Below are positions 2,569-60,100 of a stretch of 64,000 bases of DNA, piece by piece. Position numbers and translations under genes: made by a program. A model generated the notes under the pieces. That model worked only from the letters and a program-made list of their open reading frames with translations. It did no database searches and was not told the origin of the DNA. Position 1 is the stretch's first letter. Every line of letters begins with the position of its first letter. This stretch comes from Nageia nagi (Eukaryota; Plantae; Pinophyta), in assembly GCA_050084985.1 (NCBI GenBank), contig JBITNC010000002.1, forward strand, positions 16,430,001-16,494,000, read 5' to 3'.

Positions 2569-2572
2569 AGTT

Positions 2573-2584: not shown

Positions 2585-2650
2585 AAGTTGAAATCATTGG
2601 GATAACCTTTATTTTTGAGATTATTGTTGGTGTTTGGAAAGTGTTCTTGC

Positions 2651-7039: not shown

Positions 7040-7077
7040 ATGCTTTTGGGGACAAGCTCTCTCTCAGTGGGGAGGAA

Positions 7078-22249: not shown

Positions 22250-25200
22250 ATTGCTACCATATCTTGCTCCTTTGTTGAGCTATTTGATGAGCTGCCCTCA
22301 TCATCCAACTAAAGAGCTTGCGATGGCACTCCAATCAATCCCTCCATATCATCATCATCCTCAAGACAACTTGCCTCTTTTGGATCAACATCCCACCATG
22401 CAGTTGGACTAGCCTTATACTTTGGCCTAATTCTCTTTTGAAGGTGAAGAGAGGTATGCATTGCAACTATTTTCTCCACTTTAAGAGAGGTAAGTATGTT
22501 CATCTTCAAACTATGTCTGAAGTCATAGGTGGACCAATTTCTCTCTACAAAAGATTAACTACCAAATTACAAAAGTATTTGATATATTTTATTATACATT
22601 TTAATTATGTGAGAAACAATCATTCAAATACTTAATGGGATCTTCGAATTTGAGAAAGGAGCTTGATTGCAAGTTGCTTCAAATGTGGAGCATTATCCCT
22701 ATACAAATCCCACCATCCAATGGAATCTCTTTGGGCAATGGTATCCCTATCCTCTTTGCATTTTGGTTGGTTGAAACGAGAACCCCAAAGTCTTGTAAAT
22801 TTCACAAACTCATCTTTAATTATTGCAACCTCTTTTCTTCAAATACATCTTTTAAGGCAATCCTTGAACCCATGTTTTACCTTAGGATCCTCATTAGATG
22901 CCCTTCTTTGAGTCATAGGTGCATACCACTTTGGATTCAATGCATATGCAGCCATATGTAAAGAGATATTGATCCCATTCCACCTACAAGAAATAAAAAA
23001 ATAAAGTTAAAAAACTACATGAATAATAAACAATCCAAATTGAAACTACAATCGACAATCAACATTTGTTACCTATTCTCTTTAATGTGTCTAATTTGGC
23101 TTTCATAATAAGGAGGATCTTTAGTAGAAATTATCTTTTTCATTTCCCCAAGCATGTTGTCAAAAGTTCGATATATCTCTCCTAGATTACGAGAATTTGT
23201 ATCAACATATCTTATTACTGCAACAAATGAAAGATACAATGTACTTATAAGAAATAAAAAACCTACATGAACAATCAATAATCCAAATTGAAACTACAAA
23301 AGTGAAACTTCATTGATTTCAAGTCTTTAACATTTGTGACCTAGCTTGAGCCCAGTAATTCTCATCCAAGACTTTATCTCTAAGTCTGTTTCCCTCCTTT
23401 GTTTGAGATTCTGACCATCTCTTCCATTTTGCGGAAACTACCATGCCCTGCAGTGCCATTTGCACCTTAATTAACCTCGCTAATAAAATGAAATAAGTGG
23501 CATATGTCGTATCTCCTAGTTTTCCTTCTTTGAGAAGGAGTGAAAGAGGGCCAATAGAATGTGATTCTTGCAAATAAACGTTTGCAAGTCTCTAGCTTCT
23601 ACAACCATATTCCTCAGTCAAACCATCTTCTCAATGTCCTTCAATGCATGAATGCAACACGGGGTCCAAAATTTATGTGTATGAGTGTTCTCTATCAGTT
23701 TACTTGGATGTTGACAAACATGAGTTGCATTTGTAATTACTTCTACAACAAAAAATATTTAGTATTTGTATTTGCACAACAAAATACTAATAACATCATT
23801 TGAATTCACAAAAAAAATGAAAACTAAAGTGATTACCTGCACAACATTGGAGGATCCAACGTTCTCAATAGCCTCCTTCAACATGAGTAATTGGAACTCT
23901 GCATCTTCCCTTTTCCTTGAGCAATCAATAGCTTGAAGAAAATAAGGACCCTCTCAACATGTCATAATAATGTTGATGAGTGGACTTGACGAATGTTAGT
24001 CCACCTCCACCTATCCATGATAATGGAATAACCACTATTCAACCATTTTGCCTTCATCTCTTGCATCATCAAATTGCACTTGGTATATTACTTCTCCAAA
24101 AGAGATGTATGAAGTCTAGTCTCTCCAGATGGTACATACAAAGGGCCTGCCTTGCTTAATTTTTCGAATGCAACATTGAAGTAAGGTGAGCATGCAAAAT
24201 GGAAAGGTAACCCATGTGCATAAAAAAACAGTGCTACAAGATGATCAACTACCTTTTTTGCTTACAAGTTAAGCACATCAACTATGTTTCATCTTTTTGT
24301 TGAGGGTACTGTAGGACTTGGCAAACTAGAAGTAAAATGATGAGTTTCTGGTTTTGCGGACGATGAAGATCCATGGGCAAGTACATAATCTTGGCCATGT
24401 ATAGGAATAGAAGTCTTAAATCTCTAAGTCTAGCCTCTTGCACAAGCCTATTGGTTTCTACAAATTGGAATTTGTTCATGATTTTATACACCTGCACCCA
24501 TGTCCTTGGTTTGTTTAGAAGATGTAACTCAACCCTAGTATAACTGCCTTTAAATTCAATGGTACAAAAGTGCCATCTCCAAGTTCTTCCTCCCCCAACA
24601 ATTTTTTTCCTTGGTCTAAGTTTTTGACAAATTGAAACAATGTTTTTTTTTTTTTAATATTAAATGGTCCTTTAGCAAAGCTTTTCAACATTGGGCATTG
24701 ACAATCATAAGTGTGCATTGCTTCCCCTCCAAAAGTTTATGATTGTTGGACATTTCCTCCCCGCATTTGAGTTTCTGACTCATAACCAAGGTTCCACAAG
24801 AATGTTTTCCTCCCTTGGAGGGGTGTTCCCATTTTGGGAACAACTGGAGGAGTGCTTTCTTTTTTGGGGGAATGGAGGGGCCGTTCTTGGGAACACCCTA
24901 GGAAAGGGGGGTATTAACTCCTCATGCCCCTAATGGGAACAAGAAGGCGTTCTCCCTACATTTGGGTAGCCAACCAAAACTCAAATTAAAAAAAAAAAGC
25001 CAAAATCATATGGGGGTGGGACCCACCAATTTCCTCACCCCAAACCCTAAAAGCAACTTCTAAAAACATACAAACATAAGAACATTTTATTTTATGTAGC
25101 CAAAAAGAAAATACAACAATGAGAAGAAATAGACCACATTGAGGAAGAAAAAGATCTTAATGAAGAAGAGAAAGGCAATTACCAAGGAAGAAGCAACAAA

Positions 25201-28200
25201 GCCTAAGCGTATTTCACGATTTCTTATTTTACTACCTTGTTTATTAAAAAATTTCCAATATGAGTGATAGTGAGGGTTATGAGACAAAAACTCAAACTTT
25301 TGGAGAGGGGCAGCAGTACCTCCACTTATAATTGTCCGCCCCTAAGGTTGAAAAGGTTTGGTAAAGGACTATTTAATACAAAAAACTTTGCTTCAATTTG
25401 TCACAAACTTAGACCATGAAAAAAATTGCTAGGGAGGAAGAACTTGGAGATATCTTGTTTGTACCATTGAGTTTAGAGGCAATTATAGTAGGTTGAGTCA
25501 CATCTCACAAAAAAACTACGGATAGGGGAGAGAGTGTGTAAAAACATGAACATATTCCAATTTGCATAAGCTAATATGTTTGTGCAAGTGGCCAAACTTA
25601 GAGATTTAGGACTTCTTATACCTAAATCTGGCCAAGTTTTTGCAACTTCCCATGGATCTTCATAATCCTCAATACAACAATGTCATCCTTCTACTTTTAG
25701 TTTGCTAAGTCCTATGTCACCTTTAAAAATAGAGGAAATGTCGTTGATGCAGTTAACTTGCAAGAAAAAGAGGTAGTTGATGATGCTATAGAAGTGTTTT
25801 TTATGCACATGGGTTGCCTTTCTATCTTGCATGGTCATGTTACTTCAAGGATGTATTTGAAAAAGTAAGCAATGTAGGGGCTTCATATGTATTGCTTAAA
25901 GAGACAAGACTTCGTACTTCTCTTTTGGATAAGTAATATTCCAGGTGCAATTTGATGATTTAGGAAATGAAAATGACATGGGTGAATAGTTGTTGTTCTA
26001 TTATCATGGATGGGTTGATTGACATTCGTCAACTTCAACTTATCAACATTATTGTAATACATTCAGAAGGTCCTTATTTTCTTCAGGCTATTGATTGCTA
26101 GGGAAAAACCAAGGATGCAAAGTTCCAATTCTTCTTGTTGAAGGAGGCTAATGAGGAGGTTGGATCCTCCAATGTTGTGCTGATTTGAGGTATATACCCC
26201 CAAGATTTACAAGATATACCTCCAAAGTATGTGGTTGAATTTCGCTAGAGGATAGCCACATCCTTTTATCAAACCAATATATACGAGATATGCAACTTAT
26301 TTTATACTATTAGAGAGGACTATTGAGGTGCAAGAGGCACTACAGGGCATGATAGTATCCATAGAATGGAAAAGGTGGTCAAAATCTCAAACAGAGGAGG
26401 GAAAAAGACTTAGAGATAAAATTCTTGAATGAGGATTGGTGGGCCCACTCTAGGTAACAAAACTTGAAGACTTGAAATTAATGAAGTTTCACTTTTATAG
26501 TTTCAATTTGGATTGTTGATTGTTCATGTAATTTTTAAACTTTTTTTTTTTAATTTCTTGTAGGTACATTGTATCTTTTATTGCCCCAGTTGTTGCAGTA
26601 ATAAGATATGTTGATATAAATCCTTCTAATTTAGGAGAGATATATGGAACTTTTGAAAGTGTGCTTGGGGAAATGAAAAAAATAATTTTTGCTAAAGATC
26701 CTTCTTTTTATGAACGCCAAATGAGATCCATTAAAGAGAAAAAGTAACAAATGTTGATTGTAGTTTCAATATGAATTTTTTATTGTTCATATGGTTTTTA
26801 AACTTTATGTTTTTATTTCTTGTAGGTTGCATAGGATGAATACCTTTTTTTCATATGGTTGCATATGCATTGAATCCAGATTGGTATGCACCTAAGATTG
26901 CGAGAATGACACCTATTGAAGCTCTTGTGGTGAAAGATGAATTTATGAATTGCCTTACAAAGATGTATTCGAAGGAGGGGGTTGCCATAATTAGAAATTA
27001 GTTTATGAAATTTACAAGACCTAGGGGTTCTCATTTCAACAAAAGGAGGATAGGGCTACCGTTGCCCAAAAAGATCCCATTGGATGGTGGAATCTATATG
27101 GGATGATGCTCCACACATGAAACAACATGCAATTAGGCTCCTTTCTTAGGTTGGTAGATCCCATGAAATATTTGAATGATTGTATTTGTTTTTCACATAA
27201 TTATATTGTATAATAAAATATATCAAATGCTCTTGTAGGTTGGTAGTTCATCTGCTGTAGAGGGAAATTGGTTCACCTATGGCTTAATTCACATTTTGTA
27301 GAATGAATAGGCTAGTCGCAATAGATTCCTCTCTTAGCCTTCACGAAAGATTGAAGCCAAAGTGCCATGCTAGTCCAATTGCATGGTGGGATGTTGATCC
27401 ATAGGAGTCAGGCTGTCTTGAGGATGATGACAATGTGGAGGGGTTGGTTGGATTTTCATTGCATGCTCCTCAATTGGATGATGAGCGTAGCTCATTAAAG
27501 GAGTAGGGTATGCTACCAGTAGGGCATGAGCCTATAGAGCCACAGTTTTGATTTTGACATTTTGGATTTTGATATTTTCATGTCAAAGTGTAGTCTATGT
27601 TTTTAATTTTACAGTTTTAGTACTATGATCTTCGTATTGCTGATTTCACATCTATCATTATGTACTAGACTGATTTAGATTTAATGACATTATGCTTTGT
27701 GATAATTGATTATGGCTTATTTTGATATTCTAATTCATAATTGATTTTTTAATTTCAATTTCAAGTTTTGTATATATGATTGAATTGATAATAATGATGA
27801 ATATTACACAATGAAATCTCAAAAATTTGGAAATTTTTACTAGAATTATACTTGTCGTTCCTTTGGCGTTCCCTAAAAATGACCTCCCTTGTTCCCCCAT
27901 TCCTAGATAAACGTTCCCCTGTATCCCTGTTCCCCAACCTTGTGGAACCTTGCTCTTTCCCTTTAGCATCACTCATATTGGAAATGTTTTTAATAAACAA
28001 GGTAGTGAAATAAAAAATAGTGAAATACGCTTGGGCTTCTTCCTTGGCTGTGTTTCTTCCTTAATTGCTGACTTTTTTTTCTTCATTGTTTTCTTTTTCT
28101 TCTTCACTGCCATCTTTTGTTTCTTGGCTGCATAAAATGAGATGGTTTTTTGTTTGCATGCTTTAATAAGTTACTTTTAGTGTTCGGTGAGGGTGAGGAC

Positions 28201-30079: not shown

Positions 30080-31299
30080 GTATGATTTCTTCCATTAAAT
30101 GGATCTTAGCTGATTAAGTTTGCCTAAATTGAATTTTAATTGATTATAATAGGCCTTTTCCAGTAGGCTGGATTGTAGTTGCTTAATCAAAATTTAATTT
30201 TCTAATTTCTGTTTTGACAGGTACAATAAAATTTTATGTTTTTAGTAATATGTGGCTATGCGCATGAGATTAACATTTTAATGGTTTTGTTGCAATGACC
30301 AAATTTGGGCTTTAATTTGCTAATGTTAACCCCTTGTTCATGATAATGACTTTGGACTAGTTTTGCTAGCAGCATAATATGAAGTTTTCAAACTGAATTC
30401 TCTTACGATATATCTTATTTTCATTCTCATGGTGGTTACCAAAATTGGAGGAAGGAAACCTGACTGTCTACTAACTAAACATTATTACAAATAATCACAT
30501 CTGTTCACAAAAATGGCCAACATTGCCACACATTCAAAATTGAAACCCTTAAATAATATGCTCTGGTTAAGTGACTAACTTTTCCCTTTAGATAAAAGAG
30601 ATATTCAAGGCCAAATTGGGCTCACGAATGGTCAGCATCAAAATTCTGAGAAATTACATATCCCTTAAATAGAGTTGGTAAAGAGAGCCAAGTGAAATTA
30701 AGACATCAGGTCAATGACCAATAGAAGATTACTAAGGTCTTGATTTATTTTGTAAGGGCTCATAGGGTACTGTCTTTGCATCATTATCTTGGACTTGTGA
30801 TATAGCGGTGAGATTTTCAGTATGGTTTGCAGTGTTTACAGTGGTATTTCAATTTGGATTTGCAGTATTGTCCGTGTGTGATTTTTGCATGCAACTTAGT
30901 TCATATCCTACCTTGGAGAGGGACGCCCGACTTAAGGAGTCCTATTTTAGTATTTTTGTTGCTTGATTTGAGCAGCCTTTATGCTCTTCTATGTAATGTG
31001 TGATAGAAAACTGATATAAAAAATATTGTGGTGTGTTTGTGACGATTTAGGGTTTTATGGTGCATTTTTCTAGGTTATTTGCAGATCTGATTTTTTGTTG
31101 ATAAAATTTTAGAACTAGCAAGTTAGTGTTATTACAGTGGTATCAGAGCTAGTTTCCAGCCAGCCTGAGGAAAAAAAAGGGTGTGGCATACCAGTCAGAG
31201 AATTGCAAGGTAGATATCCAGTCTGAAAAACTACTTGTATGTGATATGCAAGCACATGCAACTACATGCACGTGACATGCAAGCACGAAAGTTTTATTA

Positions 31300-31630
31300 A
31301 GAAATTTTGAAGGTTTGTGTAGATTAGCATTAGGAAATTTTTCTGGACACTTTTGAAGGTTGATTTTAGGGAAAAAAGTGAATGAAGAGGAATGGTTGAA
31401 TGTTTTTTGTCCATTTTACTTGCACTTGAATTCAAATGCAGAATTTGTATATCCATTTGTACTTTGGCAAGATGTAAAGCAGCCATTTCCCTTATGTCAT
31501 GGATACTGGAAGAAATATACAGGATATATTAGCAGTTTGGTGATCATATTGCCCTGGAAACAAAGGTTTAGACAAATGCCAGATTGAGCTGGATGAACTT
31601 GAGCTTGTCCTTGATCCACGATCTAAGGGT
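31300..31630 (+). pseudogene. Captured ATG2-like N-terminal (Chorein_N) fragment, frameshifted
   Basis: Reads GYISSLVIILPWK...[shift]CQIELDELELVLDP, resembling plant ATG2 GSIGSLLVKMPWK...CQVEVDELELVLAP. Confidence 0.65.
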
Positions 31631-32390
31631 AAGACCTTGAGATGCACTGAGCATGTTCTACTGCAGAAGTAGATTCCTAAAATTTTTGATACTCAATAAC
31701 CATCATTTAAAGTGCTCTAGGGCCCGTGAGAAAGGGGTTTTCACTTATACAGGTATCCGTGATGGAGCTCAGATGATATCAAACTAGGTGGAAAGCCTTC
31801 TGCTTGGTGTCCATGTTAAATGTTTGATTACATTTGAGCCTTGTACGAAGAACTGTTGAATGAAAGCAGGATTTGAAAGCGGCAGACAATCTCAACCCAT
31901 TTTGGTTATTAGATTGTCAGAATTAGAATATGGAGCAGTGGGGTCTAATTATTCTTGTTAAAATACTCATGTATATCCAGATGACGGAATAAATTTAAGA
32001 CTTATAAGGTTTCATGGTGCAAATGTTGATCTCTATGATGCGTCTGATAATGATATTGACAGGAAACCTCTGGGGCAGATTATGTGTTTAGGACCTGATG
32101 AGGATGACAGTTATGCTTTTCAGAAAGAATCGGTGATTAATGAGGGAATAGAGTGATTTTCAAGCATCCCTGCATCAGTGACAAAAGAAACAGAAAATTC
32201 TACTTTAATTTCAGATGACAGCTCATTCATGATGAAGGGGCAAAACTTTTGCAATGTCAAAATCGTTGAAGTGTATCAGAATGCTTCAACTGTTGTTTCT
32301 AAAGATATAACTCAGCAAATTTTGTCCTTCCTTCATTAGTATAAAGGACTATGACAACATAAACCGTCTTTCCTTGATGGTGTAACTTTA

Positions 32391-34769
32391 GTGTTAGAAA
32401 GTAAATCAAACCATGTTGACACTTTGAGATATGCCTGCAAGATTTCTCATTTTCATACAAGCAACTTGCAAGTATCAAATGATGTTTCTACACAGTTGAA
32501 AGAAGTTGTTGATGTTGCAAACGTCATGAAGGAGCTTGGATATGATTGTATTATAGATGCTACACATTGCAAGGATATAGTGTCATTGTTTTGTCTATTC
32601 AAACAGCAAACAGTTTCCAAGATAATTAGCGCAGTTGTCTGTTTTCATATGGGGCTTGTGGATTCTCAAAGCACACATACAACATTTAATTCTTCACCTT
32701 TTAATGGTCACATTGATGTCCTTGTGGATTGGATCAATGAATTCGCTCCACAGATCAATTGGTATTCTGTAATGGAGACTTTAGATCATGAAAAAGTCTA
32801 CTTACCAAATCAAGAGGCATTCTCTACGTTGATGTCCGTATATACAAAAACCTACCACGGTTCTTTTCCTGTTCAAACAGTTTGTGGAATCGTGAGAAAG
32901 AATGATGCAGGGCAACTATCCTTCTTGATATATGTTGTAATTTCTTTTCCTGAAATTCTCACGTTTGCAAATTCAAGGAGGTTCCAATTACCTTTGGAAT
33001 ATGCAAATGGAAATAAACTTCCATGTGGTCCTACAAATCAGGCATGGTTGTCCATTGATCTAGTAGAAGTTCTATGCCAGTTGGCTGAAATGGGGCATGT
33101 GAGTGCTGTATATGAAATTGTTTATTCTGTAGTTGAAAGGTATAAAAGGCAGACTGTTGCTGAGTTTGGGATTCCTTTGTTTGCTCAAGAAGTTGTAGAC
33201 TCTGAAAATAATAAGAAAGGAATTAATGAAGCTGAGTTTGTTGCTAATGGTGGTGAAAGGGGTGTTTCTCCTTTGCAATTAAGGACTGTAGCTATGACAT
33301 TTTTAAGCTATGGACTGACAATGTCAAAAGAGCGGTGTGAAGAGACTGAATTAGTTGCATTACAGACTATTCCGCAGAATAGCTGCAATGACATGGCCAA
33401 AGATCTAACACTAATAATTCTGTTAGAAAAGGAATTAAATGTTCTTGTAGCTGGGGTCGAATGTTGTCATATAATACATGGAAATACCATGAAATACATT
33501 AGTCTGGCAGTGGCAGCAAAATTTGGAAATGTAGTTTCTGTGTTGGTTGCAACTTCTTGTTTTTCATTTGATCTTTTGACACCCATACGGATCTTAATGC
33601 AAAATCTACTGAGTGACATAATTCAAATCTTCATTCCTTGGGACAAAATAGATCCAGAGTATGTTAGAATACCTCATTACTGGCCGACAAATGGCATAGC
33701 TACATTTATGTTGTGGAATGGTCCTACAATTAACATTCTTAGTATTGCTACATTCTTGTTTGTATGTTGGTATTATGATGTAGATGTAGTGGACACACAA
33801 AAATTCTTTCATTCAGCATGGTTTGTGAAGGGACTTCTTATGCAAAGTCTCATTATCTACATGACCAGAACTGGAAAAATTCCCTTTATTCAAAGGACTG
33901 CCTCATGGCCAGTAATATGTGCAACTCTGGTGATATCTACAGTAGGCATAAGTGATCACTGTTATTCTGACATAGTTTTTCTGCAGCCTTGTAATGGAAT
34001 TGATGAGCATTTTGTTGGAGCTTGTGTTGAAATGAGAAGACAGTTGTTGTTGTTGGCAGCAGAAGACATTGCTTTTGAGTTGTTGTTGAAAGTTGTTAAT
34101 GGTTGGGATAGAGCTGTCATGAAGTGGTTGTTTGAACAACATTTTGAGCTTGAAGACTCTGGTTGCGAAAAGACATACAAAAAGTTTATGGACAGTTATT
34201 TCATGGCTGTGTTTTGCGTTGATTGCTCATGGAGTACTGTTATTGTTGTAATTTATATTGATCAAGCAGCAACAAAAGCTGACATGCAATCAACTTCGAA
34301 ATACTTTGAAAGAGCTGTTGAAGGAGAATCTTATTTCATGGCTCTAGAAGAGTACTTTGATGCTGACATACAGTTGATTTGGGATCCTGGAATCACAACT
34401 AGTTATGGTTATCCTTTGGTTCAGTTAGGAGTTGTTGAGGATGTGTTGACAATGCTTGTGCATTTCTTCTCCAGGCCTTCAGTTGGTTTGAGTTCAGCCC
34501 AACCAAATGATATTGAGATTACGTTTTTATTGCTTGTGGACAAGCAATTTTGGGAGGGGCGGTATTGTAATGTCCCGAATTTGATATTTGTTCGATATGT
34601 CATTCACCTTATGTTCACTTATGTTAATGTTTTGAAAGTGAAGTGGGACACCCCTTGTCTTCATGTGTTAGGAGACATAATATTATATTTTAGTGTTGAG
34701 TTTGGTGTTTTAAGTCGTTTTAGGGTTTCTCCACTCAACGAAGAAATAAAATGTCTAGCCTATATATGA
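32391..34769 (+). CDS. 792-codon chimeric ORF: NOT1 N-terminal fragment + P3B (MgtA-like) Mg2+-ATPase C-terminal TM region + retroelement-type tail running into the 3' LTR
   Basis: NOT1-like MKELGY...APQINW..VMETLDHE..YLPNQEAF...GQLSFL...NQAWLSIDLVEVLCQLAEMGH (~32510-33120). MgtA-like IILLEKELNVL...GNTMKYI...FGNVVSVLVA...QNLLSD...IPWDK...FHSAWFV.GLLMQSLII..RT.KIPFIQ..ASWPV (~33393-33950). The ORF-track start is GTG; expression is unknown. Confidence 0.8.
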   Translation: MLESKSNHVDTLRYACKISHFHTSNLQVSNDVSTQLKEVVDVANVMKELGYDCIIDATHCKDIVSLFCLFKQQTVSKIISAVVCFHMGLVDSQSTHTTFNSSPFNGHIDVLVDWINEFAPQINWYSVMETLDHEKVYLPNQEAFSTLMSVYTKTYHGSFPVQTVCGIVRKNDAGQLSFLIYVVISFPEILTFANSRRFQLPLEYANGNKLPCGPTNQAWLSIDLVEVLCQLAEMGHVSAVYEIVYSVVERYKRQTVAEFGIPLFAQEVVDSENNKKGINEAEFVANGGERGVSPLQLRTVAMTFLSYGLTMSKERCEETELVALQTIPQNSCNDMAKDLTLIILLEKELNVLVAGVECCHIIHGNTMKYISLAVAAKFGNVVSVLVATSCFSFDLLTPIRILMQNLLSDIIQIFIPWDKIDPEYVRIPHYWPTNGIATFMLWNGPTINILSIATFLFVCWYYDVDVVDTQKFFHSAWFVKGLLMQSLIIYMTRTGKIPFIQRTASWPVICATLVISTVGISDHCYSDIVFLQPCNGIDEHFVGACVEMRRQLLLLAAEDIAFELLLKVVNGWDRAVMKWLFEQHFELEDSGCEKTYKKFMDSYFMAVFCVDCSWSTVIVVIYIDQAATKADMQSTSKYFERAVEGESYFMALEEYFDADIQLIWDPGITTSYGYPLVQLGVVEDVLTMLVHFFSRPSVGLSSAQPNDIEITFLLLVDKQFWEGRYCNVPNLIFVRYVIHLMFTYVNVLKVKWDTPCLHVLGDIILYFSVEFGVLSRFRVSPLNEEIKCLAYI

Positions 34770-35322
34770 GTGGAGCATCCATTATGGGCTATGTTATTTT
34801 GATATTATATTTGATCATTGAGAGTTTGGGTTGAAAATCCTATCTCTACTTTTGTTGGATTTGGGAGATGTCCTCTTGTTCGGTTGAAGAGTCATTTTGA
34901 TGGTTTAGATGTGCCCTTTGCCATTAAAGTGATAGTGGATAGATTCATCCAGAGTCTACACTTGGACATTCAAGAATTTTAGCAGTATAGCAATGAGATT
35001 TTCAGTGTGGTTTGCAATGTTTGCAGTGGTATTTCAGTTTGGATTTGCAGTATTGTCAGTGTGTGGTTTTTGCATGCAACTTAGTCCATATCCTACCTTG
35101 GAGAGGGAAGTCCGGCTTAAGGAGGCCTATTTTAATATTTTTGTTTCTTTATTTAAGCAACCTTTATGTTCTTTTATTTAATTTGTGTGATAGAAAAATA
35201 ATATAAAAATATTATGGTTTATTTGTGACAATTTAGGGTTTTATGGTGCATTTTTCTGGGTTATTTGCAGATCTGATTTTTTATTGATAAAATTTTAGAA
35301 ATAGCAAGTTAGAGTTATTACA
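34566..35322 (+). repeat. 3' LTR of the gene-capturing element
   Basis: TGTAAT...ATTACA terminal inverted repeat, preceded by a PPT; its 3' part is duplicated at 30801-31136. Confidence 0.88.
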
Positions 35323-43339: not shown

Positions 43340-43455
43340 GTCAGCTTTTTACTGGGTCTGGGTGAAATATTTTATTATGCTTCATGTTCTTTTATTTTTG
43401 ATGCAATTTAACGGTAAAAATAATACAATGATCTTGCTTATGATTGAAATCTCAG

Positions 43456-43974
43456 GCAGAAATATTGCAGCAGATACGAGCAACCAAAATCTACAAGGTG
43501 GTAAATGAGTGGTCATTATCTGCCACCTCATGTTGCGCTTTATCATGGACTGATGATGTGGAGTTGGTAGAGATAGCTAATAATGTTTGTTGCCAAGGAG
43601 CTTCCACCTTATGTGGAATTGTTGGGATAGAAAAAGAGTGTGTCTGCAGAAAGTATTGTATCAGAAGTGTAGGCACAGGGGAAAACATGTCAGCTGCTAT
43701 TGTCTCTGGAACTTCAATTGCAAATGGCAGTGAACAAGGCATTGATATGCTGGTTCCCAGTGCAGGGCCAGTTAAACATCCTTCATATTGCAGGAATGGG
43801 AAGTGTTCAGCTGCCAACTGGTTACAGATGTATCCAGCAAGCAAAGATGTACTCACAATTTTAATCCTAGCACTACCTCCACATACTTGGTGTGAGATTC
43901 AGAATAAGGAAATACGGAAAGAAATTCAAGAGTTTGTTTCAGTTGACAACCTTTCCATTGGCTTGCAAGAGGAG
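43456..43974 (+). CDS. PCS: Phytochelatin synthase exon, Cys-rich C-terminal domain (AEILQQIRAT...VCCQGA...DVLTILILALPPHTW...LQEE)
   Basis: PCS C-domain motifs; ctcAG/GTaaa; 519 nt, phase 0. Confidence 0.92.
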
Positions 43975-44741
43975 GTAAATATGCTGGCTATTTTTTTTTT
44001 TAAATAGATTTTACTTTGTTTATTACAGCACACACTAATGTTGTCATCAGCTGTTTTGGCATCTGAACTTTTATACTGTTAATTTCTGATAAGTATTCAA
44101 GGAACATAAGTGCTCTATGATTTTCTGCGAAGTGCGAACAAAGTACATGCCATTTTCTGTTAATTCAATGAATAAGTTAAAAGCAATTGAAGCTATAATG
44201 GAAAGTGCTCTAGTCTTAGAGACATTTATATCAAGTGACTAAGGCACAATAAACAGACTTCCCGTAAACAGTCTTTTCTATTTTAAGCATAGCTAATAAG
44301 TTCCAAAGGTTACTATGTTTGAGATGGGAACTTAAGATTGAATGTTTTGATAAATGCAAAAATAAAATGTGACACAAAAGTTAAAATATATGTAACTAGA
44401 TAATTACATGCCGCATAGTATTAAAACTAGATTTCTTCTCTAGGTGAAATAACATGAGCCTTAAGTTTAAATCAAGGGATGCTCATGGGATATCTGCAAA
44501 GTGCAAACAACAAAAAAATACTAAAGAAATTCAGTTACAATTTCAAATAAACCAAGATTCTGCAAAAACTTGGATGAAGGCCATTATCAAGATGTGTTTG
44601 ATTAAGGACTTCATATCTAAATGTAGTCACTGATTTGGAATTCCAACTAATTGCAGCTTCTTTTTATTATGCACCTAGTCTCTCCTGCTTCTATGTAATT
44701 GTTTTTAATAGGAATATGAAGTGTGTGACATGATGCACATA

Positions 44742-48300: not shown

Positions 48301-48375
48301 GAGGAGCTCAAGTTTAAGTTTGGATTTTGAAAAATTGAAATTTCAATTTCCAACCCTACAGTTGAAAAGGAACCA

Positions 48376-48471
48376 CATGGTACTTGTTCGCTATCGGTCT
48401 CTTGCCTGTATTTAGCCTTGGACGGAATTTAGCACCCGATTAGGGTTGCATTCCCAAACAACCCGACTCAC

Positions 48472-48504
<33 letters not shown>

Positions 48505-48733
48505 CTGACGGGGCTCTCACCCTCTCCGATGCCCCCTTCCAGGGGACTTGGGCCCAATCCGCTGCTGAGGACGCTTCTACAGACTACAATTCGGACGACG
48601 CCGCCGTCCGATTTTCATGTTGGGCTGTTCCCGGTTCGCTCGTCGTTACTAGGGGAATCCTTGTAAGTTTCTTTTCCTCTGCTTATTGATATGCTTAAGC
48701 TGAGAGGGTGGTCTCGCCTGATCTGGGGACGCG
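48376..48733 (-). pseudogene. 26S rRNA 5' fragment (decayed)
   Basis: Reverse complement of the LSU 5' end, including near-matches to GCATATCAATAAGCGGAGGA and ACCGATAGCGAACAAGTACC, with several transitions. Confidence 0.95.
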
Positions 48734-48997: not shown

Positions 48998-50469
48998 TCG
49001 GTTCATGTGGACAGTGTGGTTCGCATGCATGGGCTTGTCAACGGGTCGGTTTGTGTCCACGGTTTGGTTCTTGTGCACGTTTTGGGTCCACGGTTCGGTT
49101 CGTGTCCATGGTTCGGTTCATGTGCACATTTTGTTACCATGGTTTGATTCATGTGCACGGGTCGGTTCGTGTGCACGATTCGGTTCATGTCCACGGTTCG
49201 GTTGGTGTGCATTGGTCGATCCTAAAACACATAGATCGTAGGCAAATTGCCCCCTTATCCGATTGCAAATAGGTATTTTAATGTAAAACTAATATAGGTT
49301 CCTTGCGGATTGACTCACGGTTTGACCCACGGGCCGGTTCATGCCCATGGTGTTGTTCATATGCACGATTCGGTCATGTCCATGGTTTGGTCCACAGGCA
49401 TGCCTTTGGTGTACTAGGATGATCCATCATCTTAATCGATCCTCCAATAATGGACGTTTTTCATGTTGGGGTCCAAAGCGAGGTTTCCAAAAAACACATA
49501 TGCCGTAAGCAAACCACCCCCTTATCCGATTGTAGACAGGTCTTTTAACCGAAAACTACTATGGTGAGGATGGTTGGTGACCCGTGCTTGCCTGGGTTGG
49601 CGCAATGCAACTCGTCCAGTCTTGAGACGGTCGGTTTCTCGAGTCGATCTTGTCACCTAGGTTGGTTATGCACGGAGCCAAACTGTCCCTTCCGTTGATC
49701 GCTTGGTCTTGGGCGCATTCTCATTTGCATCGGTCCGTCCCATGTTTCTACCCTCGGTTTCTTGCAAGGTTCATCTAAGGCGTGATGGTCATCTAAAAAA
49801 CACCCATGCCGTAGGCAAACTAGGCACTTAACCGTTTGTAGACAGGTCCTTTTACCTAAAACTACTATGGTGAGGATGGTTGGTGACCCATCCTTGCCTG
49901 GGTTGGTGCAATGCAACTCATGCAATCTCGAGACGGTCGGTTTCTCGAGTCGATCCTATCACCCAGGCTTGCTTGGCGCGAAGCCAACCTAACCCTTCCA
50001 TTCACCCGTCCCTCCATGTCTCCTGCTTTACCATGCTTCCATCCCCCTATTCGAGATTCCCCTGCAATTCGGTTGAGGTGCCAAGTACATCCCAAGCTAC
50101 GGCTACATGCAGAACGTCTCCTGTGAGTCCTTCCCATGCGCGATGGTGGGAAGCACTTGGAGGAACCCTGCCGCACGGTGTATCATGATCCTGGGTCTAC
50201 CAGCAGACTGCGGTTGCCCGATGATCACGTTGCCTATGAGTTCGCGAAGAGTACTGTGGATGCCGAGTGTAGCGACGAGTCAGAATCGTGCCCCATCCTG
50301 ATCGCGGACCCCTTGTCCTTCCCGTGCCATCCTTGCTACCTTTACCGTCCTTGCTGTGTTCGGTCCGTCCTGCCTGTCCGTCTCGCCTGTCCGTCCCTGC
50401 CTATCCGTTCCTGCCTGTCCGTTCCCGCCTGTCCGTCCCACATGTCCATTCCCGCCTGTCCGTTCCCAC

Positions 50470-53400
50470 CAGTGTTCCACACGCTTGGGGAACGGGGATA
50501 TGGGGGAACGCGGGAACGCGTATCCGGGAACGGCGGGGAAAAAATAGGGTCTTTTGGGGAACGGCAGGGAACGGCTAGGGAACGGCAAACATAATACTAG
50601 TAAAAATTATTAGATTTTTAAGAGTATCATTTCCAATTCATTTTTATTATGATGAATGATCATATTATCAAATTTAATTATGTATGATGTATACAAAATT
50701 ACAAATTAAAAACACGGAATCGAAATTACTCAATTAGAAATTCAACTTCATAGCCCATCAAATTAAAAAAGCCCAAGGGTAAACCACTAAACCGTAAATC
50801 TGATAACACAATCATAATGTCATAGGCCATAGCCCATAGGTCTGAAAGACTGAATGAAATACATAGATGGGACATCAGTATGTCGAATACGGAATACGAA
50901 TAAGTGTTTGAATAACAAAATGAAAATGCCAAAATATTAAATAACCACTATAGTCTATGGATCTATAGGCTCATGTGCTAATGGTTGTGCATCCATATCC
51001 TCCTCATCTGTTGAGCTATCTGACGATATGCTCTCATCATCCAAATGAAGAGTATGCAATGGCAATCCAAACATCGACTCATCAGCCTCATCATCATCAG
51101 CCTCAAGCTGGCCTGCCTCCACTGGATCAATGTCCCAACGTGCAGCTGGACTAGCTCTATACTCTGGCGTAACTCTCTCACTAAGGCGAAGAGAGCTATG
51201 CACTGCAACTAACTTCTCTGCTCTACGAGAAGTAAGTCTATTCCTTCGCAGACTATGGATGAAGCCATAGGTAGACCAATTTCTCTCCGCAGCAGATGAA
51301 CTACCCACCTACAAACAATCATTCAAATTAGATTTTTCATTTTTGATTATGTGAGAAAGGAGCATAGTACAATACTTAATGGCATGGCAATGGCATCTAC
51401 TAACCTGGGAAAGGAGCCTAATCGCAAGATGCTTCAAGTGTGGAGCATCATCTCCATATAGCTCCCACCATCCAATGGGATCAGTTTGGGCAATGGTAGC
51501 CCTATCCTCCTTGCACTCTTGCCTGCTAAAACGAGGACCCTTAAGTCTCACAAATTTTACAAACTCCTCTCTAACTATACGACCATCCTCTCGTGAAAAC
51601 ATCTTGGCAAGGAAGTTCATGAACCCATCTTTCAACTCAACATCATCATTAGGTGCCATTTTCCCAATCTTTGGTGCATACCATTTTGGGTTCAACACAT
51701 GGGCAGCCATATGGAGAGGGGTATTCATTTTATTCCACCTACAAAAAGTTAAAAAAAATAATTTAATAAACTTAAAGACAAAAGTTAACAAACCAAATTG
51801 AAACTAAACTCTAAAGTTAACAATCAACATTTGTTTTTGTTACCTCTTCTCTATGATGGGTCTAATATGGCCTTCATAAAAAGAAGGATCTTTGGCATTA
51901 ATTATTCTTTTCATTTCCCCAAGCATGCTATCGAAGGTCTCGTATATCTCTCCTAAATTAGGAGAATCCGTATCGGCATACCTTATCACTTCAAAAACTG
52001 GGGAAATAAAAGATACAATGTACCTACATTCAAAAAAAAAAAGAGTTAAAAAACTTAGAAAGTTAAATCTAATTGAACAATTACCTAATGACCAATCCAA
52101 CTTGAAATTCAAACTACAATAGTGAAACTTTCAAACTTTGTTACCTGGCTTCAGTCCACCAATTCTCATCCAAGACTTTATCTCTAAGTCTTTTTCCCTC
52201 CTGTGTTTGAGATTCTGGCCACCTCTTCCATTCTACACAAACTACCATGGATTGTAGTGCCTCCTGCACCTCAATCATCCTTTGCAATAGGATGAAATAA
52301 GTGGCATATCTCGTATCTGCAGGTTTAAGAAACTCCTTCTTTGAGAAGGAGCGAAAGAGGGCCAATGAGGTATGATGGTTGCAAATAAACATTTGCAAGT
52401 CTCTCGCTTCTGCAACAACATTCTTCACCCAATCTATTTTCCCAATGTCCTTCAATGCATTATTCAATGCATGAACGCAACATGGGGTCCAAAAAATATG
52501 CCTGTAAGTGCCCTCTATCAATTTTCCTGCACGCTTGCAAACAGGGGCTGCATCTGTAATTATCTGTACAAAAAAAATTAAAACGTTACAGTTTGCCGTT
52601 TGGCATTTTTACAACAAATGTCAAAAAATAAATTAGAGAACTAAAAGTAAAGTTTAAAGTTTTAAAATTTAAACTTAGTAAAGTGATTACCTGGACAACA
52701 TTGGAGGATCCAACCTCCTCAATAGCCTCCTTCAACAGGAGGAACTGGAACTCTGCATCCTTTTTTTTCCCCGAGCAATCAACAGCTCGAAGAAAATAAG
52801 GACCCTCTGAACATGACACCATTATATTGATGAGTGGACGTTGACGAATGTCAGTCCATCCATCCATAATAATGGAACATTCACTACGCACCCATGTAGC
52901 CTTCATCTCCGACATCATCAAACTGCATCTACTATACTGCTTCTCCAAAATAGAAGTACGGAGTCTAGTCTCGCCAGGTAGTACATATGAAGGTCCAGCC
53001 AACCTTACTTCCTCAAATGCTGCCCTCAAGTAAGGTGAGCGTGCAAGATGAAAAGGCAAGGCATGTGCATAAAATAATCTTCCCACTGCATCATCAGCTC
53101 TCTCTTTCTGCTGCAAGTTTAATGCTTCAGCTATATTTCCTCTTTTTTTGGAGGGGAATGTAGGACTTGGCAAGCTAGAAGAGAGTCCAATTTCTTTTTC
53201 TCTAACTGATGAGGAGGAGGAAACAATGGAGGCTTGAGTAGATTTAGGAATGGCCAGCCCATGATTCCTAAGGTAAGCCTCTTGTGCAAGCCTACTAGCT
53301 TCTGCAAACATAAATTTATTCATTTCTTTACAAACCCTCACCCCTGCCCCTTGTTTATCAGTCAAATGTGATTCAATCCTAGTATAACTCCCTTTAAATG

Positions 53401-54352
53401 TGGAGTTACAAATGTGACATTTATAAGTTCTTGCTCCCCCTTCAATCTTTTTCCCAGCATCTAGGTTTGTGACAAACTGTAACAGTGGTTTTTTAGGATT
53501 AAATGGGCCTTTAGCAAAATGTTTTAACATTGTGGATGGGCAATCAAAGATTGATGTGTTTTCTTGCTCATTTTCAACTCCCATTTGTGATGTTTCTACC
53601 TCATAGCTTTGATTTTCTTCCTCAATATCACTCATCTTGGACTGTTTTTTTTTTAAAAACTACAAGTAAAGTTTAAAATTTAAACTAAACAAGTAGAGAA
53701 TGAGAAACAGAAAATTAAAAACCTTGGACTGTGCTAAGTAATTTTCTTCTCCTCCTTGGCTTTTCTCCACTACACTGCTGTGTTTCTCTTCCTCCCTCCT
53801 TGCTCTTTCTCCTCACTGCTGTGTTTCTCTTCCTCCCTCCTTGCTCTTTCTCCTCACTGCTGTTTTTTTTCTTCTGTTTGCTGTCTTTCTCTTCCTCTTT
53901 GCTGTCTTTCTCCTCTACACAAAGACAAATGATAACAAAATCACTTTTAGCCTTTTAGAGGAGCTTTTTAGGGTTAAGGGGGGTGCAAAGTTAGGTGGGA
54001 CCCATGCTAGGAGGTTTAAAATTTTTTTTTTTTAAGTGAATCTTTTTTTTTTTTTGAGCTTTAAGCTCTCAGCTGCGCGGGGAACGCCGGATGTCCCCGG
54101 GAACGGTCGGGGAACGGCGGCCGTTCCCTGGCCGTTCCCGGGGACGGCCAGCCGTTCCCTGGCCGTTCCCGATCAGGGGGACGGTCGGGGAACGTTCCCC
54201 CTTCCCCGGGAGCCGTCTCGGGAACGGCCCCCAGCCGTCCCCCAAAAGGGGAACGGCTGGGAAACGTTTCCCAAGGCGTTCCCGCGTTCCCAAAACGTGG
54301 GAACGTCGGGAACGGCTCCTCCAGGAGGGGAACGCGTCCCCGTGGAACACTG
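50470..54352 (-). mobile_element. Intact hAT DNA transposon
   Basis: TIRs CAGTGTTCCAC/GTGGAACACTG, perfect 8-bp TSD GTTCCCAC (50462-50469, 54353-54360), GGGAACG subterminal repeats at both ends. Confidence 0.97.
50955..53635 (-). CDS. hAT transposase, 5 coding exons (53635-52691, 52563-52145, 52023-51844, 51738-51405, 51308-50955), 743 aa
   Basis: GT-AG introns with compatible phases, 2232 nt including stop. BED finger CHIC...IESHL, DUF659 IIMDGWTD/ITDAA/WTPCCVHAL, hATC SSSAAERNWS...RRNRL. Confidence 0.92.
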
Positions 54353-56555
54353 GTTCCCACCCTTTCGTTCCCGCCTGTCCGTCCCCGCTTGTCTGTTCCC
54401 GCCTGTCTGTTCCCGCTTGTCCGTCCCGCCTGTCTGTTCCCACCTGTCCGTCCCGCCTGTCCGTTCCCGCATGTCCATTCCCGCCTGTCTGTTCCCACCC
54501 TTTCGTTCCCGCCTATCCATCCCGCCTGTCCGTCCCGCCTGTCCGTTCCCGCCTGTCCATCCCGCCTGTCCATCCCGCCTGTCCGTTCCCGCTTGTCCGT
54601 CCCGCCTGTCCGTTCTCGCCTGTCCGTCCCGCTTGTTCGTCCCCACTTGTCCGTCCCGCCTGTTCCTTTCGCGGTTGCACGCCACGTCCATCCTGCCTGT
54701 TCGTTTTACGGTTTCTCGCACGGTTTGTCCTAGGCGGCATGGTCGTCTAAGAAACACCTATGCCGTAGGCAAACTGGGTGCCTAACCGTTTGTGGACAGG
54801 TCTTTTTACCTAAAACTACTATGGTGAGGATGATCGACGACCTGTCCCCGCTTGGGCTTGTCAACGGGTCGGTTTGTGTCCACGGTTTGGTTCTTGTGCA
54901 TGTTTTGGGTCCACGGTTCGGTTCGTGTCCATGGTTCGGTTCATGTGCACATTTTGTTACCATGGTTCGATTCATGTGCACGGTTCGGTTCGTGTGCACG
55001 GTTCGGTTGGTGTGCATTGGTCGATCCTAAAAACACATACATCGTAGGCAAACTGCCCCCTTATCCGATTGCAAATAGGTATTTTAACGTAAAACTAATA
55101 TAGGTTCCTTGCGGATTATCGACTCACGGTTTGACCCACAGGTCGGTTCATGTGGACGGTGCATAGGCCAGTTCATGCCCATGGTTTTGTTCATGTGCAC
55201 GATTCAGTCATGTCCACGGTTTGGTCCACAGGCATGCCTTTGGTGTACTAGGATGATCCATCATCTTAATCGATCCTCCAATAATGGACGTTTTTCATGT
55301 TGGGATCCAAAGCGAGGTTTCCAAAAAACACATATGCCGTAAGCAAACCACCCCCTTATCCGATTGTAGACAGGTCTTTTAACCTAAAACTACTATGGTG
55401 AGGATGGTTGGTGACCCGTGCTTGCCTGGGTTGGCGCAATGCAACTCGTCCAGTCTTGAGACGGTCGGTTTCTCGAGTCGATCTCGTCACCTAGGTTGGC
55501 TATGCACGGAGCCAACCTATGCCTTCCGTTGATCGCTTGGTCTTGGGCGCATTCTCATTTGCATCGGTCCATCCCATGTTTCTACCCTCGGTTTTTTGCA
55601 AGGTTCATCTAAGGCGTGATGGTTGTCTAAAAAACACCTATGCCGTAGGCAAACTAGGCACTTAACCGTTTCTAGACAGGTCCTTTTACCTAAAACTACT
55701 ATGGTGAGGATGGTTGGTGACCCATCCTTGCCTGGGTTGGTACAATGCAACTCATGCAATCTCGAGACGGTCGGTTTCTCGAGTCGATCCTATCACCCAA
55801 GTTGGCTTGGCGCGAAGCCAACCTGACCCTTCCATTCACCTGTCCCTCCATGTCTCCTACTTTACCACGCTTCCACCCCCCTACTCGAGATTCCCCTGCA
55901 GTTCGGTTGAGGTGCCAAGTACATCCCAAGCTACGACTACATGCAGAACGTCTCCTGTGAGTCCTTCCCATGTGCGATGGTGGGAAGCACCTGGAGGAAC
56001 CCTGCTGCACGGTGTATCATGATCCTAGGTCTACCAGCAGACTGCGGTTGCCCGATGATCACGTTGCTTGTGAGTCCGCGAAGAGTACTGTGGATGCTGA
56101 GTGTAGCGACGGGTCAGAACCATGTCCCATCCTGATCGCGGACCCCTTGTCCTTCCCGTGCCATCCTTGCTACCTTTATCGTCCTTGCTGTGTTCGGTCC
56201 GTTCTTGCCTGTCCGTCCCCGCCTGTCCGTCCCGCCTGTCCGTCCCACCTGTCCGTTCCCGCCTGTCCATTCCTGCCTGTCCATTCCCATCCTTTTGTTC
56301 CCACCTATCCATCCCGCCTGTTCGTCTTGCCTGTCCGTTCCCGCCTGTCCGTCCCGCCTGTCCATCCCCGCCTGTCCGTCCCCGCATGTCCATTCCCGCC
56401 TGTCCGTCCCCGCTTGTCCGTCCCCGCCTATCCGTCTCGCATAGCCAACCTAGGTGACGAGATCGACTCGAGAAACCGACCGTCTCGAGATTGGATGAGT
56501 TGCATTGCGCCAACCCGGGCAAGCACGGGTCACCAACCATCCTCACCATAGTAGT

Positions 56556-57053
56556 TGAAACGCTACCAGACGTGCCACCCCTTGGGGCATGGCTTGTCGA
56601 TGGTAACGCCCAGCACCAACATAGTCGACACGGTCCGAAAGCCTGGGTACCGGACTTATGGGAATCACCCCCGCCAGACGTATCATCCCATGGCCCGTCC
56701 TGCACGGCTAGCCAGCTTCGCCGTCTCCGTCAACTCCGTAGTTGCATACTGCTCGAGGCCTCGTGCCTCTAGAGCTGGTCCGACCCCTTGGAGCATCGGA
56801 CTGGTTTGTCATAGTTACCAGGATGCCTGGTGCTCACAGCCCAACCAACGACCTTGAAACGGGTATCACCCCTAAGGTCCCCCTGAGCTGTATTCGGCCA
56901 TCCATGTCGCCCAGTCCAACCATAGGAACGGACTCTCAACCTTGTCCGCCATGGTTCCTAAGGCACGATAGTCTGGGCCCGGAATGGATCCCCGTGTACT
57001 AGAGGTTACGCTCTACGTACACTCACCACCCCGGGAGAGGCGGCCCTCTCACA
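56556..57053 (-). repeat. 3' LTR of Galadriel-like element
   Basis: Copy of 62710-63207; about 16 substitutions by manual count. Confidence 0.95.
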
Positions 57054-57135
57054 TTCTCCCCCACTTAAAGATGTTGACGTCCTCCTCAACAATGTACCCT
57101 GAAGGGACAAGTGGGTCTCTGGCAACAAATTGGTG

Positions 57136-60100
57136 CTAGTCACGCCACCAATATTTTTCATGGCCTTCAGCCAGGAACTCTTGGATCTTGTCCTCAAAGT
57201 TGCATAAGCTTTCTGCTCTTTCCCATGTGTCATTTTCGATGGTTTCACCTTCCCATCCGATAAGGTACTCGGTTTTCTTTATCTTGCCAAAGCCCCTTGT
57301 CCTAACACCCTTGATCTCTTTTACTATCTTCTGCGGTCTGTCGATGATACCGGCAGGCGGGCGAGTGGGAACCATTCTCTCAGGGTTTTCTAGATCTTCC
57401 ACACATGGCCTCAACTGGCTGACATGAAAAACATCATGTATGTGTAGATGACTTGGTAGCTGGATCTTATACGCCACTTTGCCAATTCGCTTAATCACTC
57501 TAAACGGTCCCTCATATCTCCTCGTGAGGGACTTTGACGTTCCCGGTGCAGGCTTGAAGTGGTCTCCATCAATTCTCAACAATACCAAGTCCCCAACCTT
57601 GAACTCCAACTCCCGTCTCCTCTGATCTGCATTTTTCCGCATTCTCTACTGAGCCTGTAGTAAAAATGCTCGTGCGACATCTATTCTCTCCTTCCAATCC
57701 TCCAGGTACCAAGTTGCCGATGGGCAAGTGCTATAGTATTCCGGTACCACCGTGTGGGGAGCGATTGGTTGCCTACCCGTGGCAAGTTCAAATGGAGTGA
57801 ATTTACTTGAGGCTGACTTCTGGCTGTTATAACTAAACTGTGCAATGTCCAGGAGGTCAGGCCAATTTGTTTGGTCTGATGTCACATAATGCCTCAAATA
57901 TTCCTCTAGGATCCCATTTATTCTCTCTGTCTGCCCATCTGTCTGTGGATGGTGACTTGTGGACAGGAATAGCTTTGTGCCCATTATCCTGAATAACGCT
58001 GACCAGAAGTTACTAGTGAATCGAGCATCCCTATCCGACACAATGTTCAGTGGTATCCCCCAATATTTCACAACATGCTTGAAGAAGTACTCGGCTGCCG
58101 TTGCCGCTTCGCATGGATACCTACACCGGATGAATGTGGCATACTTAGAGAATCTATCAACCACTACCATAATGCTAGTATACCCTTGTACCTCCGGTAA
58201 GTTGGTGATAAAGTCCATGCTGACACTCACCCATGGTCCGACAGGTATTGGGAGAGGTTGAAGTAAACCTGCTGGCCGTTTTCTCACTCTTATCTTGTTG
58301 GCACAACAGGCAGCTTCTCATATAGCTTTCCACATCCTTGAACATGTTCGGCCAATAGTACCCTCTAGAGATCAACGCCATCATCCTATCTCTTCCTGGG
58401 TGTCCGGCCCAAGGTGAGTCGTGACACTTTCATTATCTCCGTTCTTAGGCCGTCCCACTTCGGCACATAGATCCTGTTGGCACCGTACATCAACAAGCCC
58501 ATACGAGTCCTGAACCTTGTCAACCGATTCACATTTGCAAATTTATCTGCTGAGGCTACCATGGCTCTGGCCTGCGGGTCATTTTCCATCCCTTCTCTGA
58601 TTCTCGAAACCAAATCCCCTGAAAGCTGTACTTGACCTGGTTGATTTGGTTGTTGATCCTCTTTAGCCAACTCCTCTTGGCCATTTGTCATCGCAGTGAG
58701 GGCACGGGGTGGTCTCTCCCCCACTTGAGCTTGGGCGAGCTCCTGCGAGTCCTCATTAGGGTCTTTTAGTTGAGCCTTATGGCTCAAGGCATCCGCTACC
58801 GCATTCTTCTTGCCAGGGTTATATCTGATCTCAGCATCATATTTAGCCAAGAAGTCTGCCCACCGTGCCTTCTTGCCCGTTAGCTTACTAGATGTCTTGA
58901 AATAAGTGTTGGAGATGTCCGTTTTGATCACAAACGGAGTGCCCAAAAGATAGTGTCTCCAAACACGTAAACAGTGTAAGACTGCCACCATTTCCTTATC
59001 ATGCGCGGGGTAGTTCGTCTCTGCGTCCTTCAGCTTCCGTGATTCATAAGCTATGGGGTGTCCATCCTGGATCAAGACCCCACCGATGGCATAATCTGAG
59101 GCATCCGTGTGCACTTCAAAAGGCTTAGAAAAATCAGGCAAGGCTAAGACAGGTGAGGTTGTGAGTTTACTCTTTAACTCCTCAAATGCTTTGTCGATCT
59201 GCTATCCAAAACCACCTTGTTTGCTTTCTGAGCAACTGCGTGAGGGGAGCTGCTATCTTTGAATATCCACACACAAACTTTCTATAGTAGTTGGCTAAGC
59301 CCAAAAACTGTCTGAGCTGGTGGACATCCTTCGGAGGCTCTCAATCCCGAATGGCATCCAATTTATTCATTTCTGGCTTAATCTTTCCACCACCGACGAC
59401 ATGTCCCAAGAAGCTCACTTCAGTTTGTGCAAAAGCACATTTTTCCTTTTTGACGTAAAGCTCATTCTCCCTGAGCTTGTCAAACACCAAGGCCAGATGT
59501 GTTTTGTGCTCCTCTAGGGACTTGCTATAAACCAATATGTCGTCTAGATATACCACGACAAACTTATCCAAATAAGGTCTGAACACATCGTTCATCAGTG
59601 TACAAAATGTCGCGGGGGCATTGCATAAGCCAAATGGCATAACCATAAAATCAAAAGAGCCATATCTCGTTACACAGGTTGTTTTCTCTTCATCACCCTG
59701 TGCGATACGCACTTGGTAATAGCCTTGCTTTAAATCAAGTTTCGAGAAGTACACGGCTTTACCCAGTCGATCAAAACAATCCTCAATGAGTGGGAGTGGG
59801 TACTTGTTTTTGATCGTAATTTTATTAAGGGCCCGGTAGTCCACACACATCCTCAATGACCCATCTTTCTTTTTCTGAAATAGCACTGGTGCCCCATAAG
59901 GTGAGTGAGACAGTCTCAAATAACCAGCAGCCATCAACTCCTCTAGCTGTTTCTTTAACTCTACCATTTCAGTCGCTGACAGTCTATACGGTCTGATGGA
60001 TGGTGGTTTGGCCCCCGGTGTTAACTCAATCTTGTGATCCACTGTTCTCCTCGGTGGAAGTCGGGTTGGTAGCTCCACTGGCATCACATCTCCATATCTC

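Follow-up and report, generated by a model that had tools for sequence, protein, structure and literature searches.

The closest described counterpart of the element reported here is the maize long terminal repeat (LTR) retroelement Bs1 (Jin and Bennetzen, 1994; Elrouby and Bureau, 2001, 2010; summarised in PMC13317346). We analysed a 64-kb stretch of DNA (64,000 nucleotides of Nageia nagi contig JBITNC010000002.1; hereafter the window, with positions counted from its first letter) and found an LTR element of ~4.5 kb at 30801-35322. Like Bs1, it has no reverse transcriptase, carries pieces of three unrelated host genes, a P-type ATPase among them, and joins them in a hybrid open frame; that of Bs1 counts about 740-750 codons and is mobilised in trans. 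The donors differ: a P3A H+-ATPase, a xylanase and a glucanase in Bs1, and CCR4-NOT subunit 1 (NOT1), RRP6-like 3 (RRP6L3) and a P3B-ATPase here. Judged from its sequence, the element is a Bs1-like transducing element. A first, sequence-only reading of this stretch had drawn the same analogy, and it fits (PMC13317346). Fragments of several unrelated host genes are fused in a hybrid frame.

LTR elements that carry captured gene fragments have been reported from maize, rice and sorghum. Within the B73 genome of maize, none was found to hold fragments of more than one gene (PMC2774510). A study of Platycladus orientalis reported that transposable elements (TEs) of gymnosperms, LTR elements included, captured about 400,000 exon fragments per genome, some of them transcribed, and that about 14% of the gymnosperm host TEs hold two or more fragments (PMC13477047). 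The present element resembles these gymnosperm LTR elements in holding captured exon fragments, and differs from most of them in having at least three donors and one very long frame. Given the 14% of multi-fragment TEs in gymnosperms and the absence of multi-gene LTR elements in maize B73, a mosaic of three or more donors is uncommon, yet not of a new kind. The earlier suggestion of an undescribed gene-shuffling family was therefore overstated, because exon capture by gymnosperm TEs, LTR elements among them, had already been described genome-wide (PMC13477047).

Element anatomy and donor genes

All coordinates of the element are given for the + strand. The 3' LTR (34566-35322, 757 bp) opens with TGTAATG at 34566 and closes with ATTACA, so that its termini, TGTAAT...ATTACA, form a 6-bp terminal inverted repeat. 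Its final 337 bp (34986-35322) pair in direct orientation with 30801-31136; over the 336 bp of this repeat the identity is 90%, with 31 substitutions, two indels and a Kimura two-parameter (K2P) distance of 0.10. Shared sequence is thus confined to the last 336 bp of the 757-bp 3' LTR. The 5' copy (30801-31136) consists of the final 336 bp of an LTR, ends in ...TTATTACA and has lost its first ~420 bp. We regard it as truncated because the corresponding 420 bp of the 3' LTR (34566-34985) found no second match within the window. With this truncation the original target site was lost and no target-site duplication (TSD) can be read; with a repeat of 336 bp the flanks would be TGTGA and AAGCC, which do not match, but this comparison is uninformative on a TSD given the truncated 5' LTR. 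An LTR of only 336 bp was considered and rejected, as the repeat begins with TATAGC and has no TG start, no polypurine tract upstream and no TSD.

The internal signals can be read directly. A primer-binding site, TGGTATCAGAGC, lies at 31138-31149, one base past the end of the 5' LTR, and has the sequence known as the complement of the 3' end of the plant initiator tRNA-Met (tRNA-iMet). The polypurine tract GGGAGGGGCGG (34552-34562) stands three bases ahead of the 3' LTR. ARAGORN detected no tRNA gene in the 64-kb window. Between these signals lies an interior of ~3.4 kb, in which Pfam searches of the + strand open segments of at least 30 amino acids and of seven minus-strand segments of at least 66 amino acids revealed no gag, protease, reverse transcriptase, RNase H or integrase domain. 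The same search readily recovers TE domains in two other elements of the window and served as a positive control. The element is a pol-less, non-autonomous LTR retroelement. The repeats, TGGTATCAGAGC and GGGAGGGGCGG bear out the anatomy that the sequence-only reading had proposed, namely LTR, tRNA-Met primer site, ~3.4-kb interior, polypurine tract and LTR. Its limits of the 3' LTR were right, while its 5' LTR proved incomplete, with just 336 bp left. That gag, reverse transcriptase and integrase are missing, as it had also stated, holds for the scanned open segments of both strands.

The first recognisable host piece is a fragment of the N-terminal HEAT region of NOT1 (32124-33122), corresponding to residues ~91-448 of plant NOT1. 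It matches the transcript-derived sequence P0121 with 51% identity over 326 residues (tblastn, E 8e-97), angiosperm NOT1 proteins with 37-38% identity and human CNOT1 in the PDB with an E of 1.7e-7, and NOT1 as a donor, named before, is thereby confirmed. The stretch had been described as continuous over 200 codons or more. Continuous it is, but it runs for ~333 codons, contains three in-frame stops near its 5' end, which the homology crosses upstream of the 804-codon frame, and has three in-frame deletions and none out of frame. The MIF4G, CAF40-binding and NOT1 superfamily-homology domains are missing, and with only residues ~91-448 there the piece does not amount to a functional NOT1.

Next follows a fragment of RRP6L3, a member of the exosome 3'-5' exonuclease family, at 33111-33356 (82 codons, residues ~617-698), between the NOT1 and the ATPase pieces. 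It is 66% identical to P0128/P0129 (E 7e-30) and 61% identical to Taxus chinensis P0130 in the 82-residue segment, a value that falls to 41% over a longer stretch of 150 residues. In many angiosperms the homologues carry the name RRP6-like 3. A second ATPase match at 33261-33413 (E 0.009) was taken as a chance hit, since it sits under the much stronger RRP6L3 match.

After a filler of 12 nt comes the fragment of a P3B-type ATPase of the PH1/MgtA type (33369-33953; 195 codons, residues ~715-909), comprising the end of the P-domain and C-terminal membrane helices. Identity is highest to Ginkgo Gb_14318 (67% over 195 residues), followed by Cryptomeria (65%) and angiosperms (52-57%); Petunia PH1 is among the matches. 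The E value is 1.6e-43 against residues 660-850 of E. coli MgtA and 9e-9 for Pfam Cation_ATPase_C. The proposed Mg2+ P-type ATPase donor is confirmed by the MgtA and Ginkgo matches. As the piece covers only residues ~715-909 of ~950, the full A, P and N domains with the phosphorylation motif are not present. The nearest relatives of all three pieces are Ginkgo, Cryptomeria and Taxus sequences or transcripts of such kind, in agreement with the gymnosperm-like host assumed earlier.

When the protein P0003 was run against metagenomes, it recovered L001, a contig that resembles a cDNA, along with two short pieces of plant genomic DNA, L018 and L019, and bacterial loci. The two plant-like fragments have a common 133-nt intron (L018:325-459 and L019:1307-1441) at residue 253/254 of a PH1/MgtA-type ATPase, from which it follows that introns are conserved in the plant genes of this family, bacterial-looking as it is. 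P0180, on a 33-kb contig that the metagenome search did not recover, matches P0003 at residues 413-533 only and was read as a single exon.

Upstream of the NOT1 piece lies a decayed leader with unassigned coding-like pieces (31150-32123), which we searched separately and never joined across stops. The sequence-only reading had listed ATG2 as the third donor beside NOT1 and the Mg2+ P-type ATPase. The latter two stand, ATG2 was not confirmed, and RRP6L3 had been overlooked. For the ATG2-like stretch (about 31510-32120) we obtained no ATG2 match in Pfam (whose ATG2 domains are Chorein_N, ATG2_CAD and ATG_C), the PDB or the ESM Atlas, and a HMMER scan of 1.84 billion proteins with 31962-32153 returned a single protein, P0169, and no ATG2. 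The N-terminus of Arabidopsis ATG2 may resemble two short stretches, ~31590-31630 and 31890-31930, which we treat as a lead and not as support. A PRP39-type HAT motif at 31480-31527 (Pfam HAT_PRP39_N, 16 residues) has an E of 0.005, which is below the cut-off and uncorrected for ~30 queries; it may be followed as a lead and is not a finding.

P0169 is an open reading frame (ORF) of 108 amino acids on a contig of 3,954 nt in the assembly of a public sequencing run. It aligns with 31773-32078 of the window without gaps at 79% identity and stems either from the donor locus or from a second copy of the element. Between 31510 and 32354, a span of ~280 codons, the window contains at least six stops and two frameshifts, and three of those stops are absent from P0169, which reads Q, G and E at these positions.

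An open frame without parental constraint

In contrast to this broken upstream segment, the frame that follows is intact. It extends over 804 codons plus a stop (32355-34769), reaches 200 bp into the 3' LTR and, counted without the stop (32355-34766), is the longest ORF of the window. The first in-frame ATG at 32526 leaves 747 amino acids. In the remaining five frames the same span contains 35-69 stops each. It spans the NOT1, RRP6L3 and ATPase pieces, which are in sense orientation, adjoin each other and share one frame; none of the three junctions that can be assessed breaks this frame, for which the chance is 1/27. Behind the ATPase piece the frame continues through a tail of 204 codons (33954-34565) up to the polypurine tract. 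For this tail we found no match in Pfam, the PDB, the ESM Atlas or a search of 5.8 billion proteins, the last restricted to proteins of 442-1407 amino acids. AlphaFold gave the tail a predicted local distance difference test (pLDDT) value of 38.6 and no confident fold.

How improbable such a frame is depends on the divergence it has passed through. Calculated from its own codons, 4.2% of random substitutions create a stop, which corresponds to 102 expected stops per unit divergence. The probability of no stop is 0.13 at a divergence (d) of 0.02. It falls to 6e-3 at half the divergence of the LTRs (d=0.05), then to 4e-5 (d=0.10) and 2e-7 (d=0.15). Frameshifts would lower these values further, and the LTR pair has two indels in 336 bp. 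For eight lesions scattered randomly along 1,084 codons, our own arithmetic gives a chance of ~2e-5 that every one falls within the first 280. The unbroken 804-codon frame is hard to explain by chance, and the freedom of the last 804 codons from stops and frameshifts suggests that something selected for an open frame.

The amino acid sequence behaves differently. Among the columns that are invariant in land plants, the window has changed 15 of 70 in the ATPase (21%), 16 of 63 in NOT1 (25%) and 15 of 41 in RRP6L3 (37%). At variable columns, residues unseen in the homologues make up 18% in the ATPase and 29% in NOT1, about as many as at the invariant ones; RRP6L3 is an exception, with 17% at variable against 37% at invariant columns. 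Since replacement is about as frequent at invariant as at variable columns, the parental constraint appears to be gone. In a maximum-likelihood (ML) tree of the ATPase segment the window groups with non-angiosperm sequences, Ginkgo being the nearest, and its terminal branch has 0.48 changes per site compared with a median of 0.17. Compared with the gymnosperm-type cDNA L001, the number of substitutions per site is 0.23 at nonsynonymous positions (dN) and 0.6-0.9 at synonymous positions (dS). Taken together, the invariant-column changes, the ATPase branch and the comparison with L001 point to roughly 0.1 substitutions per site in the element lineage since capture.

Origin of the mosaic

We consider it probable that 30801-35322, in a genome of gymnosperm type, is an old copy of a non-autonomous LTR retroelement, truncated at its 5' end, whose head-to-tail mosaic of host coding sequence arose by template switching. 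The copy retains the cis signals for reverse transcription, namely the R-U5 end of an LTR, the tRNA-iMet site, the polypurine tract and a complete 3' LTR. The order of its interior, leader, NOT1 (~333 codons), RRP6-like 3 (82), P3B-ATPase (195) and the 204-codon tail, was most likely produced by a reverse transcriptase that switched templates repeatedly between the element RNA and co-packaged host mRNAs. An autonomous partner may later have mobilised the product in trans, as proposed for maize Bs1. The evolution of the captured pieces no longer resembles that of the genes from which they came. Gene capture by template switching of this kind is covered in a review (PMC13317346), and transduced sequences in LTR elements are mostly in sense orientation (PMC7264820). 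The presence of a related sequence elsewhere, P0169 on another contig, also favours this origin.

Several points weigh against this explanation. We infer capture at the RNA level from the orientation and the contiguity of the pieces only. The lack of a TSD and the truncation of the 5' LTR mean that the two repeats could derive from different copies through recombination, which would undermine any dating based on the LTRs. The same two features, together with the 12-nt filler between the RRP6L3 and ATPase pieces, speak for a mosaic that was built at the DNA level between two LTR fragments, by filler insertion during double-strand-break repair, nested processed pseudogenes or ectopic recombination, and that contains no retrotransposed cargo. 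We think this improbable, as the primer-binding site adjoins the 5' LTR and the polypurine tract the 3' LTR exactly, every mapped piece is in sense, contiguous and in one frame, and a related sequence occurs on another contig. Moreover, no intron-like interruption is found in the 333, 82 and 195 codons of the three pieces. Plant genes of the ATPase family do have introns elsewhere.

The open frame itself can be read in two ways, to each of which we give about one chance in three in the sense of a serious but minority possibility. One is that the chimeric frame is, or until recently was, translated and selected, either as a host gene born from the element, like the maize BS1 protein, or because translation, irrespective of the protein made, guards the element RNA, for instance against nonsense-mediated decay. 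At d=0.05-0.13 roughly 5-14 stops would be expected, yet the 804 codons contain no stop and no frameshift, and the deletions of the NOT1 part as well as the assessable junctions preserve the frame. The at least eight disabling lesions are crowded into the ~280 codons upstream, three of them being absent from P0169. A stop inside the 3' LTR would give a short 3' untranslated region, and Bs1 provides a precedent. Such a protein sits uneasily with amino acid changes that seem unconstrained and with a tail that has no recognisable fold. In addition, the leader ahead of the first in-frame ATG is 1.4 kb long and contains 46 ATGs, an arrangement that speaks against a full-length transcript being translated efficiently. 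We found no other chimeric ORF of 442-1407 amino acids in 5.8 billion protein clusters, so that nothing indicates an open frame shared by a family.

The other reading, held open to a similar degree, is that the element is a neutral relic. The frame could be a chance survivor, since a scan selects extremes and may have picked an outlier. If the LTR pieces stem from different copies after recombination, for instance, their divergence may also overstate the age of the copy. The unsafe dating speaks for it, and at d=0.02 a frame without stops would be no great surprise (probability 0.13, as given above). Unconstrained amino acid evolution is what a relic would show, and the source genome is said to be rich in TE-borne gene fragments. 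However, replacement of ~25% of the invariant sites corresponds to a d of about 0.1 since capture, for which the probability of an intact frame is about 1e-5 with frameshifts uncounted, and the part of the element directly upstream is badly disrupted. For the copy as a whole we retain the favoured origin by template switching. With regard to its frame, we put forward, as a tentative and rather doubtful proposal, that the 800 codons were long kept open while the amino acids drifted freely. Selection would then have favoured translatability as such, for instance because it shields the element RNA against nonsense-mediated decay, or else a new chimeric membrane protein composed of NOT1 HEAT repeats and P3B-ATPase helices.

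Surroundings and place among known elements

Two other LTR elements lie in the window. The one at 1431-8074 is a young Ty3/gypsy-type element with terminal repeats that are 96-99% identical and with reverse transcriptase, RNase H and integrase domains. Its coding sequence is split into ORFs of 237-399 amino acids, each shorter than the 804 codons of the older-looking mosaic element. The second, a Ty3/gypsy element at 56556-63009 on the minus strand, has LTR ends of 96% identity and an ORF of 749 amino acids for gag, protease and reverse transcriptase; it is the element that the sequence-only reading had called a Galadriel-like chromovirus. The segments 22283-24409 and 25617-27499 are the arms of a large imperfect palindrome and are about 80-85% complementary. 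A DUF659 (hAT-type) protein is encoded at 51090-53154, and to this segment both arms show a similarity of 74-88%. The arms (22283-27499) and 51090-53154 look like older, rearranged copies of the hAT element that the sequence-only reading had noted.

An uninterrupted ORF of 187 amino acids at 43444-44007 (+ strand) matches Pfam Phytochelatin_C (E 6e-50, profile positions 75-248 of 252). This C-terminal part of a phytochelatin synthase may represent one large exon of a genuine gene, or else a further intronless fragment that was captured or retro-copied. From about 48 kb on, the window resembles sequence of the ribosomal DNA spacer type. A fragment of eukaryotic large-subunit ribosomal RNA on the minus strand (48373-48708; Rfam RF02543, 282 bits, covering positions 24-358 of the 3401 in the model) borders on the G+C-rich part. 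G+C-rich blocks at 49000-50480, 54340-56490 and 63200-64000 are composed of tandem units of 13-14 nt (CCTGTCCGTCCC-like) and of repeats of ~306 bp. The blocks are duplicated about 5.8 kb apart and occur inverted again near the window end, which fits a repeated spacer array broken by TE insertions.

The mosaic element shares with the LARD, TRIM and TR-GAG classes that LTRs, primer-binding site and polypurine tract are kept, that pol is absent and that partner proteins are needed. The interior of those elements is non-coding or holds gag only, whereas here it consists of host coding sequence. Pack-MULE, Pack-CACTA and Helitron elements are likewise mosaics of host genes that are able to form chimeric transcripts. 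They capture DNA, often keep introns and take up fragments in either orientation, in contrast to the retroelement signals and the uninterrupted, sense-only pieces described here. Bs1 keeps a gag-like part; no such part was detected in the present element, and its host is of gymnosperm type instead of maize. The Bs1 frame is transcribed and translated (PMC13317346).

Among the known routes to exon shuffling is the capture of gene fragments by LTR elements, now reported to be massive in gymnosperm genomes. Single LTR elements that join several donors in a long frame are represented by few clear cases, Bs1 being the textbook one, and the element described here adds an independent second one from a plant lineage far removed from maize. 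A measurable oddity goes with it: the protein sequence appears unconstrained, and the frame is without nonsense or frameshift lesions. Should the pattern hold in other copies or species, it would reveal by what means frames of this kind stay open and how frequently genes arise from them.

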